Shown: piece by piece, positions 28,268-36,936 of the stretch | Layout: every line of letters begins with the position of its first letter | Position numbering within the stretch: position 1 is the first letter of the stretch | Assembly: GCA_020891255.1 (NCBI GenBank) | Contig: BQFW01000012.1 | Coordinates: forward strand, 1,550,001 to 1,614,000 | Direction: 5' to 3' | From: Entomortierella parvispora E1425 | Taxonomy: Eukaryota > Fungi > Mortierellomycota | Length of the DNA stretch: 64,000 nt | Made by a program: the position numbers and the translations under genes | The notes under the pieces: generated by a model | Database searches by the model: none | What the model was told of the DNA's origin: nothing | Seen by the model: only the letters and a program-made list of their open reading frames with translations

Positions 28268-28849
28268 CTACTCGTAGTCCTCAAGTGCCTGAACAGCGTC
28301 TTCATACTCCTTGGAAGTCTTGAGCTCTGGGTTGATGTTTGTCTACACAGAAATGGCGCATCGAATTTTTGATTTACCAGGTTAGTATCAGAAGAACGAA
28401 TCCGAAGCAGTTATGAACCACAAAGTGCAGATAGACAAGGGGACTTACAACGAGGTTTGCCAAGTCTTGGTGGGCCGCCTTTTTCCTTCTCTCCACATCT
28501 GGCAACATGTCCAGGGTCTCCTCCAACACTTCGCGCTGCTTCTTGATATCGTAATCCTCGGGGTCCTTGGCGATCATGGCATCAATGCGTCCCTGCTGGT
28601 TCAGCTTTTCGCCGTTGTAGAAGATTTGTTCTTTGGCCAGTCTGTCCGAAGAGAATGGGGGAACGAGTCAGTTTCTGGGAAAGCGGAGGTGGGACTGTGG
28701 CTCTGCTGCCCATTGGCTTCTTTTTTTTTTCGGTGGAATGCAACGCCGAGGAGAAAAAAAAAAAAAAAAAAAAAAAAACTAGATGACAAGAGGGGGGGGG
28801 GTTACCTCTTGAGGACATTAGTCTTGATGGAGAGATCGCGGGTCGACAT
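28268..28849 (-). CDS. TBCA: Tubulin-specific chaperone A (cofactor A / Rbl2)
   Basis: Three exons: MSTRDLSIKTNVLKR|LAKEQIFYNGE...YDIKKQREVLEETLDMLPDVERR...LANLV|TNINPELKTSKEYEDAVQALEDYE*. LxIKTxVxKRLxKE and YDIKKQxEVLxE are TBCA motifs. Confidence 0.93.
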
Positions 28850-29295
28850 TGTAGCAGTTGTTGATGTTTGAGTCTGAAAGGAAGCAGTGGAGGAGGGAGA
28901 AGGCAATGAGAGATGGTGGTGCAAACGGGTTGCTTGGTGCGAATGAGAGCAACAAGATGCAGCCCTTTTTATGTTCAGGGTTGCTTCCACAGCATTCGCT
29001 TAGCCTGCAAAACAGTCCCGTAGTCACGTCCCGTCCTATCTGCCGCGGCGCGAAGCCTCTTTCCTTCTTTGGCGTCTTTTCTTCCTTCCCCTTCTACTCC
29101 CCTTACTTTCCCTTATCCCTTCAAAGCCCCATCCTCTCAACACGCGCTTCACTACTTTTTTGGGGTTTTTTATTATGATAATGATAATGATGATGATGAT
29201 AATTACATTAGGATGACTAGAAGTCTATGTACACAGAAAGACTGCCTCTTTTTTTTTTTTTTTTTTTGAGAAAAAAAAATAATGAAGAAAGCAGT

Positions 29296-30777
29296 TTAGT
29301 GGATGGCGTTGTTGACATTGCCAGCGACATTATGGGCTCCAGTGCTGACAGCGTTGGCAGCGTTGTGGGCACCGGTGTTGATGGTGTTGGCGGCGTTGCC
29401 AAGACCGCTACCGGTCGAGTTCACGGTGCCGTAGGCTCCGCTGTTGACGTTCGAGGCAGCGTTGTGGACATTGCTGATGGTAGAGTCAACGACACCGGGG
29501 CCACGAGGCTGGGTGTTGTAGCCGGAGGTGGTGGTGGTGTTATAGCTGGTGGCCATAGTGGGGTTATGGACACCAGCAGTGTTCACACCAACAGCGGGGG
29601 CCGTGGTGGTGTGGTAGGCGTTGCCAGCAGGGACCGAGGACGAGGCAACGACGGGGGCGCCAGTGTTATAGGCGGTGGTGGTGGCACCGGTGGGGACAGA
29701 CTTGACAACGACGGGCTCGATCTTCTCAGTCACGACAGTGCGGGTAGGGCCGCGGTTATCATAGTTGGCGGCCGAGCTGTTGTAGACGGTGGTGTGCTCG
29801 CCACGCTTTCTTCTCCAGCACCAGCCCAAGAGACCGGCCAAGGCGGTGGCGGCCAAGCATCCCAAAACGATACCGGCGATGGAACCGCCAGAGATATGGT
29901 TACTCTGCGTCGTCACGAAGGGGGTCCCGGTGGGAGAGGTGATGGGGGCGGCAGTGCGGGTGCCACTGACACGACGCGTCGACGTGCCGCGGATGATGCC
30001 GGGTGTGCCAGAGACCCAGGTGGTGGTACCGGGCAAGATGGCAGTGCCACCAACAATAGCCGTGGCACTGACGATGCGGGTGGTGCCGCTGACAACAGCG
30101 GTCTGGCCTCCGTAGTAGGTGGTACCGTTGTAAATACGGGTAACAACGCTGCCGCCACCGGCAGGCGAGGAAGGCGAGAAGGTTTGGGTACCCTGGCCGG
30201 GCCGGTACTGGTAAGGGTTACCAAAAGGGTTGGTCAAACCAGCCATGCCGCAGCGACGAAGGAGACCCTCGACGTTGACAGAGTTCTACATTCATATTTG
30301 GGTGAGGAAGAGAGTGAGTAGACTGGCTTTTTCAATGTGCATCGACATTGCCTAGATGATGAGTCCGAGCCAATCACAGACATGGCAGACAGGCAAGACA
30401 AGGCTCAATTGCTCCGCGTTATCTTTTACCTCATAGAACTGGGTAGAGCTGCGACGGCATTGGCAGGCAGCGTAGTTGTTAATGTAAGTCTGGTTGCACT
30501 GCTTGGCATTGCACTGCTGGACGTTGACATTAGGGTTGCTGCAGGTCACTAAAATGTCACATCATTGTCAAAAAGTTGGTAAGATTGTGCGATTCCAATT
30601 CCAATGCCCAATCTCAATTGCTCAACGTCATAAAAAGAAAAAAAAAGGGTTTGTAAGCTTACAAGGGTAGACGTTGATGGCGCGGCACGCCTGGTTGACA
30701 GCAGAGGTGTCGGGGCACTGGTAAGCAGAGGCAGTTGAGGCAACTGCCACGGCGGCGAGGATGAAGGTGGCCTTCAT
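29296..30777 (-). CDS. Type I membrane protein: signal peptide, 8-Cys extracellular domain, S/T/G-rich stalk, one TM helix, low-complexity tail (407 aa)
   Basis: Exons 30777-30663, 30548-30430, 30285-29296, phase-consistent GT-AG. Signal MKATFILAAVAVASTASA; Cys at residues 21, 31, 41, 51, 56, 67, 69, 90; TM ISGGSIAGIVLGCLAATALAGLLGWCW followed by RRKR. Confidence 0.88.
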
Positions 30778-30877
30778 GGTTGACTTATTTTTGCAAAGAG
30801 AGTAGTGGAGAGGATGTGAAGTGCGATGAAGAAGAGCAAGAGAAGAGAATTTTTTTTTAGAAAACGTCTATGGAGGG

Positions 30878-30885
30878 TTTATATA
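30878..30885 (-). promoter_or_regulatory. Putative TATA box (TATATAAA) of the 8-Cys membrane protein gene
   Basis: About 100 bp upstream of ATG 30777, followed on the minus strand by a CT-rich leader. Confidence 0.55.
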
Positions 30886-31503
30886 GCTCCCGCCGAGGGG
30901 CACGGATGGGACGACGCGTTTTACAACACTCGGCGACCGTTGGTCGATCAAAGACAACTCGGTCTTTGCTTAATGTTCGATTCATTATAAAACCGCCAGA
31001 AAGGATTTTTCGGTCCTGCAGCGCGCAGTCCAAACAGGAATCAATCTTCCCAAAGACACCAGATGACTGCAGGTCGCCTTCTTGCATCCACTTTGTTCAA
31101 CGGTGTGAGACCACTCTGGAGAGACTTTTTTTGGTCTCACGACTCGCAAAAAAAAAAAAAAAAAAAAAGTGGTCGAACTCGGACGAACGAGCGACGACGC
31201 TCACCATGCGACATTCGTCCATTTTTTTTAGAGAAGGGACGATCAGTTAGAAACAGAACGCGTCTCGATCAAAGCACAACAACACCCTGTTTCAACTCGC
31301 ACAGACCCCCTTTCTGCTATGTCTGTTCTTCTTAGAGATGCACTTTTATTCATCAAATGTTCATGTTATGTACTATGGAGAAAGAGATGTACTACGATTT
31401 CAAGAATGGAATGGGGTTCATAAACGCTACAGGGACCGGCCTCTTTGGCATCAGATGTGTGATGTCTCCTGTCCCCGGTTTCTGTCTGATGTCTTTCGTG
31501 CTT

Positions 31504-31737
31504 TCAAAGGACATGTACGTTTTGGACCTTGGCCTTGACGGGGACACAGACTTTGGTCTTGACATTGCTGACATTGACGAGACCACGCTTTCCGAGGGCC
31601 GCACTACCGCTATGGGGAGAGGCGTTTTGGGGCTTGATGTCAGCAGTAGCCTCCACAGAGGGCTCTACCACCTTGTGGGGCGCGGCTTGGACCAAGGCGA
31701 TGGCGGCCAGGACGACGAAAACGGCTGAAATCTTCAT
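31504..31737 (-). CDS. Small secreted prepro-peptide (77 aa); a Kex2 site would release the cationic Val-rich 26-mer GLVNVSNVKTKVCVPVKAKVQNVHVL
   Basis: Intronless ORF with signal peptide MKISAVFVVLAAIALVQA/AP, a pro-region ending ALGKR and a C-terminal peptide. It has a TATA box upstream, and its first 12 nt (ATGAAGATTTCA) are identical to the neighbouring repeat precursor. Confidence 0.82.
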   Translation of the reverse strand: MKISAVFVVLAAIALVQAAPHKVVEPSVEATADIKPQNASPHSGSAALGKRGLVNVSNVKTKVCVPVKAKVQNVHVL

Positions 31738-31841
31738 GATGAGGTTTTTTTCTTTCTTTTCAAGTTATTGGAGAAGAGGGATGAAATGGGTAAGGAAGAG
31801 GCAAGAGAGTGTGAAGAGAAGTGCAAGACGGCTCCCTGGTC

Positions 31842-31848
31842 TTTTATA
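31842..31848 (-). promoter_or_regulatory. Putative TATA box (TATAAAA) of the 77-aa prepro-peptide gene
   Basis: About 105 bp upstream of ATG 31737, followed by a CT-rich leader. Confidence 0.55.
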
Positions 31849-32632
31849 AGAACGCGGTGAGATTCAAAGACAGATTACACATCCACAGAGGTCGGGCTTG
31901 ACATGAAGCGGACCTCCTTCAGCTGGGTCATATTCGATTGCCATGCGACAGGCTCTTCCCCACCTCCTTGATTTTGTGCCTTGCAGGAGTGAAGGCTCTG
32001 AACCAACAAGAAGAAATGAATGGCTAACTAACATGGTCTTGTTTCTGGTAAGAAGAAGAACGAAAAGTACAAGGAGTCGCACATGTATTATTGAGGATGA
32101 AGTGTAGAATGGAATCATGTCCATCTCTGTCTCCGTTCCTCCGCCACTTTAAGGGAAGGTCGGGGCTCTTTCAAAGAGTTTTCTACCATTAATTTCGTGA
32201 GAGATGATTTCGAGCATTCTGGGGCGACGGTCAAGGTCATTGTTATGGGAAAGCCCAACCCGTTTTCCAATGCTAGGACACCTACGGGATTGGGCACACG
32301 ATCTATAACTTCTGCAACTTGAGTTCTGCAACTTGAGTTCTGCAAAAAAAAAAAAAAAAAATCGATTCGATCTTCGAGAGTTCGTGGTCCAATGGTGGAA
32401 GGTCGATGTTTACGCAAAATCGCATATTTAATTGTTTACTATGTGAAGATGTGTTTTTCTCTAGGTTCAGTAGATAATGGTTCTTATTATGTTCGGCACA
32501 ATGACTTTGACAGTGTGTAGATGTGTAGATGTGTAGATGATGTGAAGTTGCTCTTCGCTTGTGGAGTCCAGCTCTTGCGGGAGCAGACTGAGCAGACAAC
32601 TCAAATTCAAGAAGGCGGAAGATACGATCGAT

Positions 32633-33694
32633 TTAAAGGAAGAGGAAGCGCTTCTTGAGGTCCTCGTTATCCTCCTCTTCATCTTCATCGTCCTCCTCGC
32701 GCTTCTTGAGGTCCTCGTTGTCCTCCTCATCATCCTCATCGTCCTCCTCGCGCTTCTTGAGGTCCTCGTTGTCCTCCTCATCATCCTCATCATCCTCCTC
32801 GCGCTTCTTGAGGTCCTCGTTGTCCTCCTCATCATCCTCATCATCCTCCTCGCGCTTCTTGAGGTCCTCGTTGTCCTCCTCATCATCCTCATCATCCTCC
32901 TCGCGCTTCTTGAGGTCCTCGTTATCCTCCTCATCATCCTCATCATCCTCCTCGCGCTTCTTGAGGTCCTCGTTGTCCTCCTCATCATCCTCATCATCCT
33001 CCTCGCGCTTCTTGAGGTCCTCGTTGTCCTCCTCATCATCCTCATCATCCTCCTCGCGCTTCTTGAGGTCCTCGTTGTCCTCCTCATCATCCTCATCATC
33101 CTCCTCGCGCTTCTTGAGGTCCTCGTTGTCCTCCTCATCATCCTCATCATCCTCCTCGCGCTTCTTGAGGTCCTCGTTGTCCTCCTCATCATCCTCATCA
33201 TCCTCCTCGCGCTTCTTGAGGTCCTCGTTATCCTCCTCATCATCCTCATCGTCCTCCTCGCGCTTCTTGAGGTCCTCGTTGTCCTCCTCATCATCCTCAT
33301 CGTCCTCCTCGCGCTTCTTGAGGTCCTCGTTGTCCTCCTCATCATCCTCATCGTCCTCCTCGCGCTTCTTGAGGTCCTCGTTGTCCTCCTCATCATCCTC
33401 ATCGTCCTCCTCGCGCTTCTTGAGGTCCTCGTTGTCCTCCTCTTCATCCTCATCGTCCTCCTCGCGCTTCTTCATGACCTCCTTGCGGTCCTTCTTGCCC
33501 TCCTTCTTGGGCTCCTTCTTGTGACGCTTGATGAGCAGGGAGCGCTTCTGGGCCATGTTGTTGCGGTGGTGTTCACCTTGAGCCTTGGCGTTGGTGTGGC
33601 TCATGGCCTTGTTGTCCTGGTGGTGGGGGACAGGGGCGGCATGGACGACGAGCAAGGTCGCAGCGAGCGCAGAGAGAATGAGTGAAATCTTCAT
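32633..33694 (-). CDS. Secreted Kex2-processed repeat protein (KEP), 353 aa, with 16 copies of EEDDED(D/E)EEDNEDL-KKR and terminal FLFL
   Basis: ATG start and signal peptide MKISLILSALAATLLVVHA/AP. Dibasic sites AQKR, LIKR, MKKR and LKKR after every repeat. Composition: 77 aa leader + 16x17 aa + FLFL = 353 aa. TATA box upstream. Confidence 0.9.
   Translation of the reverse strand: MKISLILSALAATLLVVHAAPVPHHQDNKAMSHTNAKAQGEHHRNNMAQKRSLLIKRHKKEPKKEGKKDRKEVMKKREEDDEDEEEDNEDLKKREEDDEDDEEDNEDLKKREEDDEDDEEDNEDLKKREEDDEDDEEDNEDLKKREEDDEDDEEDNEDLKKREEDDEDDEEDNEDLKKREEDDEDDEEDNEDLKKREEDDEDDEEDNEDLKKREEDDEDDEEDNEDLKKREEDDEDDEEDNEDLKKREEDDEDDEEDNEDLKKREEDDEDDEEDNEDLKKREEDDEDDEEDNEDLKKREEDDEDDEEDNEDLKKREEDDEDDEEDNEDLKKREEDDEDEEEDNEDLKKRFLFL
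32648..33463. repeat. Coding minisatellite, 16 x 51 bp
   Basis: Plus-strand unit gcgcttcttgaggtcctcgtt(g/a)tcctcctc(a/t)tcatcctcatc(a/g)tcctcctc; 816 bp is exactly 16 units. Confidence 0.97.
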
Positions 33695-33814
33695 GTTGTG
33701 TAAATGTGTGATGTGGTAGGTGAGAAACGGATATGAATGTCGATGTCGATGAGAGAGAAAAAGAAAAGAGAGGAGAAAAAAAAAAAGAGAAGAGGGAGCA
33801 CGAATGGCCTTGCA

Positions 33815-33820
33815 TTTATA
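33815..33820 (-). promoter_or_regulatory. Putative TATA box (TATAAA) of the KEP gene
   Basis: About 120 bp upstream of ATG 33694, followed by a CT-rich leader. Confidence 0.55.
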
Positions 33821-35754
33821 CCCTCCAGAGCCGGGGTGGTTCCCAAAAAGAACCCATTAGGACCTCCTTGACCCCCCAACCTGTCTTTGTCCTGGTCGAC
33901 CTTTTCCCCCCCCTCCCCCACAGTCTCCAAGGCGATTAACTACAGCAACAAAAAAAATGGAAATAGACCCATTTGTTATCTCCTGTTCGAGTACCTGGCA
34001 AAAAAAAAAAAAAAAAAAAGGCTGGGACCAGCTGGGTTCCCTTGAGCCCTGATCCTCCTTTCCTTCCTTCTTGCTGCAGCAACGAAAAGGAAGGGACAAA
34101 AGACTACGGAAATCATCAGGACCATGTATGACCTCCTTGAAAACGAAGAGAAAAAAAATAGTATATATAGCAGAAAAAAGGAACCGTAGGCATGCCCCAT
34201 GCAGACTCAATTGAACTGGAAAGACGTGAATGCAGTAAAAGATGAGTGCAAAGAATACAAAGGTCCCAAGTCAGTCGCCTCAGAAGGGGTCAGTTGCAGA
34301 AAGATGAGGAAGGGTGAAGGGAGATGAAGGAGGTTGGGGGGGAGGAGAAGGAGAGGGAGAGAGGAGGCAGGGAGCAAACTTGGAATAATTTTTTACGAGC
34401 TAGTGTCGCGTCAAGGGATCCCGGGGTCCAGGGAACACAGGAATTTCCTCTCGATAGTGGTACTGACGTGTCGCGGAAGCTTCAACAGCGAACATTGCCA
34501 TATTGCCTCTTTTTTGCCTGATGCCATAGTCCTGGGTTGAGCATTGCGTTATATCAATCCGCCGAATGAAAGAGGCGAAGGGATGGAGAGAGGCCAATAG
34601 GCCACATAACTAGAATCCAATAGGTACGAACAGACCAGTGTATCGGAATAGGCAAAATCGTCCCCTTGACCAAAGCGAAAAAGAGAAAAAGAGATGGGTG
34701 CCAGACAGGAGTCAGGAGGAAGACCGTCATGTCCATCCAAACAAGGTCGCCTTCGACATGCTCGAGATCTGCCATCAGCGATTTGCTGGAAGTATGGTAC
34801 TTGTGGCGCGCTCTCCTCCTCTCCTTCTCCCCCCTCTCTCGCTGCCTTCCTCTCCTATCCCCCCCTTTATTTCGCTACAACGACCTTTGTTGGTGTGCGA
34901 CAGCTTTGACTCCTTTATTCGCATGGTGCTACTCTATGCCATCCCTTCCTTTCCCCAAAGCCAGAAACAAATTCAAGGAGAGCTGCCGCGAACTGCAGCC
35001 CAATCCTGCAGCAATTGACACACCACCGATTTTTTTTTGTCTTGTTCAAAAGTACTGTATGTCTATCTTTCCGCACTCCCTGGCTGATTTTCTTTTTGGC
35101 ATCCAAATGTCGCAACGCGCACCTGGAGCTGAGGAGGGATTGAGGAAGAGGGTGAAAGGGAGGGGCCAGGGAGGGGAGAACGAGGAGAATTCCGAGGGGA
35201 GACTCTGCCGATAGAAGAGAAAAGAGTCTGGTGCCTTACCAAGCACGGCACCAGCTCCTTAGCACGCAATCATCGGAGGGGGATAGAAAGGATAGGCTAT
35301 GCGTAGGACGCGCTATGAGCACAGAAGGCAAAACGCTAGATCATCTTCTTGACGCCCACTTTCCCCTCAAGGGCCGTTTTTTTTTCTATTGGCTTCTGAG
35401 GACTTATTGTACAGCGAGCCTCCTCCATGATGATTAATGAGTCGTTGTCGAAGCTTTTCCCCTCCAAATGGCCCGGTACCTGATTCACCTGCCACTGAAG
35501 CACGTTTCTAGTGTGCATGTCCAACTCATGATACAGCTACTAATGCACCTTGATCCACAGCAAGGGGAAATGAGAAGCGTAAGCCAGATCCCAGTAGATT
35601 CATTCAGACACGGAGGTTTGAGCTTATATTGCCATAGGCAGCTTCTTTAATTGCTATCAATTTTCAATTTGACAAGACACAGAACAGAGTTCCAAACCCT
35701 TGGACTACTGTCGCGTTCAATTTACAGGGCTTATTGGGTTTCGTTGGGGGTAGG

Positions 35755-36936
35755 TTACAAAAGGGTCTCGCCAAGTGCACATCGGACCAAAGAACAGCCA
35801 ATGGTGACAGTTTGGAAGACAGATTCGTCATCCTCCAAAGTAGGGTTCACCTCCATCAGGTCCATAGCGACCAGGCAACCCGTTTCATAAATGGCCTCAC
35901 AAATGTAGTGTCCCTCTCTGAACGTCAGTCCTCCGCGGACTGGGGTACCTGTCGAAGGCGCAACAGAGGGGTCCAGGGCATCGACGTCAAAGCTCAAATG
36001 GATCGGTCTTGATCTATTGGGGGAAACATGCTGGACAGCCATCTCGACCACCTTTGCGATTCCATACTTGTCGACCTCGTGCATCGAAAAGGCTTTGATC
36101 CCATGATCCCTCAGGATCTTCTTCTCCCCAGCATCGACATCCCGAAGTCCGATATAGACCAATCGATCTTTGGTCAGACAGGGTTTGACCCAGCTGAATT
36201 CCTTGACTTGTCCTGCGATTCCCAAAAGGAACGAAACGGGACAACCGTGGATGTTTCCACTATCGGTCGTCTCTGGAGTATTGATATCCTAGGTTTTTAT
36301 CGTGGGGGAGGGGAGGGATGGTTTGTTTGTTTGTTTGTTTGATTTTTTTTTTTTTTTTTTTTTTTTGGATCAGATAAACCGTGCGAACAATTTTTGTACT
36401 CGATTTGGGGTGGCACAGACAAATATTTCCACCTACCGCATGGGCGTCGATCCAAATCAAAGCCGCGTCGGGATGGACAGACATGGTGCCCGCGACTGTC
36501 CCCAAAGCAATTGAGTGATCGCCTCCCAAGGTCAAGGCCAAGGATCCTTCCCTCAGATGGGCCGCTACAGATCCTGCCACGGATTCAGTGACGGCAGAGA
36601 CATAGCGAGAGTTCAGGAGTTTGCCCACGGGCGGATCGGAGGCGGGTCGCAATTGAGTATAATCCCTGTGGCCATCAAACCTGACCTGCCAGTCCAGTTC
36701 CTTCAGCTGGTCCAAGAGCCCAAATTCAATCATCTTTAGAGGACCTCGGTCGACACCATCCCTTGGCTACGAATTTGAAGGGGGAAGAGATGGGCCAAAG
36801 GGCGTTTAGCAACCTACACTGTGGGGTCAAGGAGAACATGCTATCTATCGCCACTACTTGCCTGCCCTCCTGAGAAAGGCACAGGGATGACGCCTACAGA
36901 TCTTTTCTTGAGGAATTTCTGGTTGACCGACGACAT
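35755..36936 (-). CDS. CAR1: Arginase
   Basis: Exons 36936-36862, 36766-36437, 36288-35755. Motifs PFSGGQ|PRDGVDRGP, LTLGGDHSIALG, WIDAHA|DINTP, SGNIHGCP, IGLRDVD, HLSFDVDALDP and GGLTFREG. The first intron is GC-AG. Confidence 0.97.

Follow-up and report, generated by a model that had tools for sequence, protein, structure and literature searches.

Among secreted proteins of fungi, the Kex2-processed repeat proteins, or KEPs, are defined by a signal peptide, at least three similar units split by KR, RR, or KK, and repeats that make up at least 15% of the length (PMC6339444). KEPs have been catalogued in Mucoromycota, at about 9 per strain and with functions unassigned; 8 were counted in Mortierella verticillata and 0 in Lobosporangium (PMC7329392). 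Rep1 of Ustilago maydis is a secreted precursor that is cut in the secretory pathway, and its peptides form amphipathic amyloid fibrils on aerial hyphae (PMC3133707). Here we set a locus of Entomortierella parvispora against these systems, with Le Marquer et al. 2019 (PMC6339444) and Umemura 2020 (PMC7329392) as the sources for the KEP comparison. This soil fungus belongs to the Mortierellaceae, and the sequenced strain, E1425, hosts a Mycoavidus endobacterium (PMC8759367). The window, by which we mean the whole 64-kb stretch that was analyzed, is G000:C12:1550001-1614000 of a 38.9-Mb genome in 20 contigs. Three co-oriented genes, called A, B, and C here, lie in it on the minus strand between the genes for TBCA and arginase, as found from the open reading frame (ORF) listing and direct reading, and their products are all predicted to be secreted or surface proteins. 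Judged from sequence, B and C are lineage-restricted, fast-evolving genes for putative secreted pro-peptides of the Kex2-processed type. We lean slightly toward the view that the adjacency of A, B, and C is simply an inherited order of independently acting genes. The two peptide genes are laid out as follows.

32633..33694, minus strand: gene C, 353 aa; signal peptide, then a pro-region that is basic and rich in His, 16 acidic units, and FLFL at the C terminus
32648..33463, minus strand: gene C repeat array, 16 x 51 bp, each repeat encoding an acidic 14-mer plus KKR
31504..31737, minus strand: gene B, 77 aa; signal peptide and pro-region, then a single KR site and the 26-mer
31507..31584, minus strand: region coding for the C-terminal 26-mer of gene B; charge +4, one Cys

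How well does gene C fit the KEP class? It has a predicted signal peptide (an MK start, a 14-residue hydrophobic core, and a V-H-A cleavage motif), and its array holds exactly 16 units of 17 aa between dibasic sites, where the KEP definition asks for at least three. Fourteen of the units are identical, while the first and last differ by one residue each. The repeats account for 272 of the 353 residues (77%), against a required coverage of 15%. At the DNA level the units vary at 11 synonymous and 2 nonsynonymous positions, and Tandem Repeats Finder reports 16.2 copies with 98% identity. A unit-by-unit table gives every 14-mer a charge of -12, in agreement with a preliminary description of this DNA, which had read C as a precursor of 16 anionic 14-mers. 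As in other KEPs, unit number and unit sequence vary fast across species. Unlike them, C has a predicted cargo that is almost pure Asp/Glu, with no hydrophobic or aromatic core. The parts of the locus, as predicted, are a hyperacidic KEP (C), a single-unit beta-type peptide of a KEP family (B), and an 8-Cys membrane glycoprotein of a Mortierellaceae type (A). The earlier statement that no system of this layout had been described was therefore too strong: C matches a catalogued class, B amounts to one unit of a KEP-type family, and A is a member of a large family, found here only in Mortierellaceae.

Where else do these genes occur? Exact look-ups of B and C in public assemblies gave no match, and a word-index search with B returned only B itself. 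The N terminus of gene C had one protein match, P0002, on a 9.7-kb metagenome contig (L003). This contig is congeneric, with arginase exons 86-93% identical and intergenic DNA about 45-75% identical to those of E. parvispora, and it carries the arginase, C, and B orthologs in the E. parvispora order and orientation. Relatives of B were obtained via synteny and a full-library HMMER search. Orthologous, TBCA-linked loci of six more species were fetched through their A homologs.

Podila horticola (L006): C-B-A-TBCA
Podila clonocystis (L005): (end of C)-B-A-TBCA; the contig ends within the acidic array
Gryganskiella cystojenkinii (L004): (end of C)-B-A-TBCA; the contig ends within the acidic array
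Linnemannia zychae (L008): B-A-TBCA; C not found within 3 kb upstream
Dissophora ornata (L009): C-A-TBCA; B missing from the fetched locus
Lobosporangium transversale (L024): A-TBCA; neither B nor C

A-TBCA-Mob1 is syntenic at every orthologous locus, that of Lobosporangium included, and TBCA, Mob1, and an FYRN/FYRC gene follow in one order at most of the fetched loci, so A appears to head an old synteny block. Seen across these loci, B and C look like variable additions at the upstream edge of the A-TBCA-Mob1 block. The preliminary description had made the linkage of the three genes in relatives one of its tests, and the outcome is divided. The order C-B-A-TBCA is present in both Podila species and in G. 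cystojenkinii, and arginase-C-B is present on L003, but the trio is not obligate, given the gaps in Linnemannia and Dissophora and the lone A of Lobosporangium. That neither B nor C is found at the Lobosporangium locus fits the count of 0 KEPs for that genus (PMC7329392). The A paralogs of E. parvispora, EMPS_06065 and EMPS_01783, have no B- or C-like neighbor. A locus of M. alpina (L023), considered as a further synteny case, turned out to hold a paralog unlinked to TBCA and so is uninformative on this point.

Orthologs of gene C are present on L003 and in P. horticola and D. ornata, with partial copies at the contig ends of G. cystojenkinii and P. clonocystis. The first 23 residues are identical in the L003 ortholog, while the pro-region is evolving almost neutrally in the same comparison (ratio of nonsynonymous to synonymous substitution rates [dN/dS], 0.91). 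The type of unit, an acidic stretch ending in DL and followed by KKR, recurs in four further taxa with differing acidic cores. P. horticola has 8 units of the same 17-aa length, and P. clonocystis and Gryganskiella have at least 2 units each at their contig ends. On L003 there is a single acidic block made up of repeats of 8 residues, with KKR at both ends and nowhere between; in Dissophora the acidic region is long and rich in S/D/E, and KR sites are few. Because the units of the E. parvispora array are 98% identical in DNA, the array must be very young, and the 16 units look like a recent expansion specific to the lineage. What appears to be conserved across species is a secreted polyacidic segment with dibasic sites at its bounds. 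Past the last KKR the proteins differ: the tail is FLFL in E. parvispora (window 32633-32647), LFLL on L003 (L003:8106-8117), and LFLRRNA in Gryganskiella (L004:90-110), and both Podila orthologs are missing this hydrophobic C-terminal tail. The two public assemblies that end inside the acidic array of the C ortholog do so at L004:1-100 and L005:1-125, and these breaks suggest that the arrays there are long as well.

Gene B is a very different precursor. Its 26-mer has 4 Lys and no acidic residue, just as the preliminary description had it, along with 1 His and 1 Cys. With one KR site and a single unit, B falls outside the KEP definition, which calls for at least three repeated units. Orthologs are present on L003 and in G. 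cystojenkinii, both Podila species, and Linnemannia. The dibasic site and a one-Cys peptide of 26-34 residues are kept in all 6 taxa, and in 5 of the 6 the peptide has 26-28 residues. Compared with L003, gene B is under purifying selection (dN/dS, 0.28), and the 26-mer is its most constrained part (dN, 0.148; dS, 1.2). The net charges of the peptide over the six orthologs are +4, +3, +1, +6, +7, and +3, the +1 being that of Gryganskiella.

Does B belong to a larger family? When the B alignment was run against the full library with HMMER, two more proteins came up, one with four and the other with two B-like units, split by RR/KR. The E. parvispora genome itself contains a multiunit relative, unlinked to the locus.

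G000:C2:935196-935981 (L002:1483-2268; also L026:197-985): 8-unit paralog of gene B

This gene is predicted to encode a 262-aa secreted precursor with units of 27-29 residues and RR/KR between them. It has its own TATA box and a leader resembling that of B, and it fits the KEP definition. By sequence comparison, then, B belongs to a family of beta-type KEP peptides in which a precursor has one to eight units, B itself having a single one. In the multiunit relatives the Cys is replaced and unit charges run from -3 to +1, so cationic charge and the Cys are traits of the A-linked B orthogroup and not of the family. The complementary charges of B and C, which the preliminary description had noted, are not conserved, as these units and the +1 of Gryganskiella illustrate. 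No acidic partner is found within 9 kb of the 8-unit paralog. AlphaFold2 folds the paralog into all-beta stacked hairpins (pLDDT, 78; pTM, 0.75), in which each unit contributes two strands of ~11 residues and the dibasic sites lie in turns. A fold search with this model gave only weak beta-helix rows among solved folds and no match in an atlas search, and we treat the stacked-beta arrangement as a lead only. In a separate genome (GCA_048593815.1), a 109-aa putative secreted protein with two B-like units of net charge -3 and -2 is encoded at L011:10001-10438; its gene adjoins a DUF3723 gene on a 3-Mb contig.

The upstream regions of A, B, and C have several features in common. On the correct strand, a TATAWAW heptamer starts upstream of each ATG, at a distance of 108 nt in A, 111 nt in B, and 126 nt in C, and a CT-rich tract lies downstream of each TATA box. 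Since the 64 kb hold only 22 such heptamers on both strands, the TATA boxes of the three genes are taken as real promoter features rather than chance. This agrees with the initial picture, in which three adjacent genes on the minus strand all have a signal peptide and a TATA box.

33814..33820, minus strand: TATA box of gene C (TATAAAT), then a CT-rich tract; kept in L003 and L006
31842..31848, minus strand: TATA box of gene B (TATAAAA); kept in L003
30879..30885, minus strand: TATA box of gene A (TATATAA)
33860..33869, minus strand: 10-mer AAGGAGGTCC upstream of the gene C TATA box; kept in L003
31910..31919, minus strand: 10-mer AAGGAGGTCC upstream of the gene B TATA box; the aligned position on L003 reads AAGGAGGTTC

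The A orthologs of G. cystojenkinii, P. clonocystis, and P. horticola also have TATATAA, 135-145 nt upstream, and TATAAAAGACC at the gene B TATA box is common to the promoter of the 8-unit paralog. The 10-mer AAGGAGGTCC has only 2 exact copies in the window, 71 nt (B) and 49 nt (C) upstream of the TATA boxes. Neither the gene A promoter nor those of Podila, Gryganskiella, Linnemannia, and Dissophora contain it. The 10-mer could be a cis-element, or it could be left over from a duplication. Duplication is suggested by the coding regions too. Genes B and C both start with ATGAAGATTTCA, confirming that their first 12 nt are the same, and their leaders are very similar; in addition, Dissophora C is 60% identical to E. 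parvispora B over the first 20 residues. A search for the shared leader as a genome-wide pattern matched B only. The earlier suggestion that B and C arose from each other by tandem duplication is plausible on the basis of the common leader and the upstream 10-mer, together with the 12 nt and the Dissophora match, and we consider such an origin probable. Some shared regulation of B and C within Entomortierella is plausible as well.

What would these genes do? In the scheme that we favor, both B and C would enter the endoplasmic reticulum via their signal peptides. In the late Golgi, a kexin would cut after KKR or KR, and a carboxypeptidase would then trim the basic residues. C would in this way give rise to the hyperacidic 14-mer (charge, -12) in 16 released copies, and B to one released 26-mer that is basic and has a single Cys; for both genes, processing and secretion are predicted from the precursors' sequence features. 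By analogy with the U. maydis repellents, the B peptide would most likely be a self-associating, surface-active, or wall-associated beta-peptide. The B-type unit has many Val, Ile, and Lys residues, follows an alternating pattern, and in the model of the 8-unit paralog would form stacked beta-hairpins; the amphipathicity of B is only a trend, and the likeness to Rep1 is one of features and not of sequence. Gene A, with its Wsc/Mid2-type layout, most likely acts independently. Since TBCA and Mob1 are equally syntenic, an inherited gene order is enough to explain why the three genes are neighbors.

Several observations count against this scheme. (i) The C-B-A order in three genera, together with the leader and 10-mer common to B and C, could mean coregulation. 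(ii) The beta hydrophobic moment of B exceeds the shuffle mean in 6 of 6 orthologs, with p values of 0.04-0.26 each, which is a trend only. (iii) The beta-stack model rests on a single sequence, repeats can be overmodeled as solenoids, and the ESM Atlas model of the same paralog is poor (pLDDT, 0.55). (iv) On L003 and in Dissophora, C has no KKR-bounded 14-mers in its acidic region, so a discrete 14-mer may not be the selected product of the gene. For four copies of residues 48-77 of B, a complex prediction returned a score of 0.03 where the mark is 0.32, and it speaks neither for nor against self-association. A search for sequencing runs with the whole 4.5-kb stretch listed no RNA run.

The first of these points leads to a possible, if unlikely, alternative in which B and C form a two-peptide module. 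Here the two genes would be coregulated, and the polyanions of C would neutralize the cationic B peptide, act as its chaperone, or serve as its template, whether inside the secretory pathway or at the hyphal surface, as a counterpeptide or by coassembly. The adjacency of C and B in E. parvispora, L003, both Podila species, and Gryganskiella speaks for such a module, as do the common 12 nt and leader and the pair of 10-mers near the two TATA boxes, kept in L003. Charge is also largely as expected, with B orthologs cationic (+3 to +7) in 5 of 6 taxa and C always strongly acidic. However, within the fetched loci Linnemannia has B without C and Dissophora has C without B, the Gryganskiella B peptide is barely cationic, the 10-mer is not found in the promoters of the other four genera, and the 8-unit paralog has no acidic partner within 9 kb.

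It is also unlikely that C is not a peptide precursor at all. According to this alternative, it would be a secreted, disordered, polyanionic protein, for example, one that binds cations or minerals or is associated with the wall, and the KKR sites of E. parvispora would be a by-product of the recent amplification of a C-terminal unit. The undivided acidic domains of L003 and Dissophora are in keeping with this, as are the extreme youth of the E. parvispora array and the nearly neutral pro-region. Why, then, would the DL-plus-KKR boundary be kept in P. horticola, P. clonocystis, and Gryganskiella? This recurrence opposes the idea, and even the L003 acidic block has retained KKR at both ends, which argues that the dibasic sites are selected.

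A broader version of the module is decidedly improbable. It posits a conserved two-gene system of the Mortierellaceae in which the 14-mer acts in trans to control the secretion and the cross-beta assembly of the 26-mer on hyphae, perhaps with A reading the result. In this reading, the hyperacidic, Kex2-released 14-mer would be a counterion or chaperone for the cationic single-Cys 26-mer. There is a parallel of sorts in cationic antimicrobial precursors of the defensin type, which carry anionic pro-pieces in the same chain. As in those precursors, an acidic polypeptide would be paired with a cationic secreted peptide; unlike in them, the acidic partner would be a separate gene product, and the pro-region of B itself is not anionic. 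To our knowledge, hydrophobins are confined to Dikarya, and the Mortierellaceae lie outside that group.

Gene A is encoded in three exons.

30663..30777, minus strand: exon 1, signal peptide and start of the Cys-rich domain
30430..30548, minus strand: exon 2, middle of the Cys-rich domain
29296..30285, minus strand: exon 3, end of the Cys-rich domain, Ser/Thr/Gly-rich stalk, transmembrane helix, and cytoplasmic tail

The splice model, in which both introns are GT-AG, equals P0003 (EMPS_08868, 407 aa) letter for letter, and the exon-3 translation is 100% identical to EMPS_08868. The ectodomain has 8 Cys within residues 21-90 at a spacing of 9-9-9-4-10-1-20, and 2 more Cys lie in the transmembrane segment. 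Gene A was thus correctly described at the outset as an 8-Cys single-pass membrane protein, with the qualification that the 8 are those of the ectodomain, out of 10 in total. The stalk spans 124 residues (30% Ser plus Thr, 17% Gly) and is followed by the transmembrane helix at about 216-238, then RRKR and a tail of 164 aa in which T, A, and N abound. At least 87 homologs make up the family; all of the named ones are from Mortierellaceae, and 16 rows have no source name. Every full-length model examined has the Cys-rich domain, stalk, transmembrane helix, and tail, and in the Cys-rich domain 21 columns are invariant among 25 sequences, a mark of strong conservation. Two public gene models that involve A are composites. 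The 520-aa Gryganskiella model P0004 (L004:1290-3673) starts at the ATG of the B ortholog and runs into A, and the 484-aa P. clonocystis model P0006 (L005:3211-5839) joins A and TBCA (PF02970).

Is A a CFEM protein? UniRef labels several family members "CFEM domain-containing" and one distant member "Mid2 domain-containing." A shares with the Wsc/Mid2 and CFEM proteins its signal peptide, its N-terminal domain with 8 Cys, a stalk rich in Ser and Thr, one transmembrane helix with a basic stop-transfer sequence, and a cytoplasmic tail. The Cys spacing of A, unlike that of CFEM proteins, departs from their consensus, PxC[A/G]x2Cx8-12Cx1-3[x/T]Dx2-5CxCx9-14Cx3-4Cx15-16C, and CFEM has been reported absent from "Zygomycota" (PMC4530338). 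Strict and relaxed patterns of this consensus gave 0 matches among the fetched proteins, including the 87 members of the A family, and the Pfam column is empty for all of these members, CFEM PF05730 included. A profile search against PDB sequences found nothing relevant at E values up to 10. With the ectodomain model, Foldseek against the PDB, VIA-align, the ESM Atlas, and the protein atlas returned only generic helical matches, and no CFEM chain appeared among the Foldseek or VIA-align hits. No solved CFEM or WSC structure matched A in sequence or in fold. With the consensus failing, no Pfam hit, and no CFEM structure retrieved, the CFEM label stays unconfirmed. Because pattern, Pfam, sequence, and fold searches all fail to back it, A is described by its layout, as a putative surface protein of the Wsc/Mid2 type by layout only.

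The receptor-like layout of A raises the idea of a peptide-sensor pair, in which the Cys-rich ectodomain would bind the B 26-mer, or else the C peptides, as an autocrine ligand. B or C does lie directly upstream of the TBCA-linked A ortholog in seven taxa of six genera. We nevertheless find this very improbable: Lobosporangium has A without either peptide gene, the A paralogs have no peptide neighbors, the A promoter is without the 10-mer that B and C share, and the ectodomain model is weak (AlphaFold2 gives a five-helix bundle that reaches a pLDDT of 76 in only one of five models). Finally, a fungal cluster for peptides made on ribosomes and modified after translation (RiPPs; ustiloxin/dikaritin type) was considered and rejected, since no tailoring enzymes are nearby (the neighbors are A, TBCA, Mob1, and arginase) and the Pfam tables of six orthologous loci list no DUF3328 (UstYa), tyrosinase, or methyltransferase.

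The flanking genes are those originally named, TBCA and arginase.

35758-36225 and beyond, minus strand: arginase gene
~28374-28990, minus strand: TBCA gene, identified by its ORF and by synteny with PF02970 genes

Between C and B, a perfect 14-bp tandem repeat (2.6 copies) lies beside a T17 run at window 32310-32345. Long A/T homopolymers are found at 28754-28778 and 29245-29275.

The main contribution of the locus is that it adds two families to a known class. At the same time, annotation is corrected where public gene models join B to A and A to TBCA. Were the acidic and basic peptides to act in concert, they would represent a trans version of the anionic pro-piece principle, and they could provide a hyphal coating that is independent of hydrophobins. 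KEPs are numerous in early-diverging fungi, and none there has a known function. With a hyperacidic KEP of unusual cargo, a newly delimited family of beta-type peptides, and a neighborhood kept in several genera of a widespread group of soil fungi, this locus offers a tractable case.

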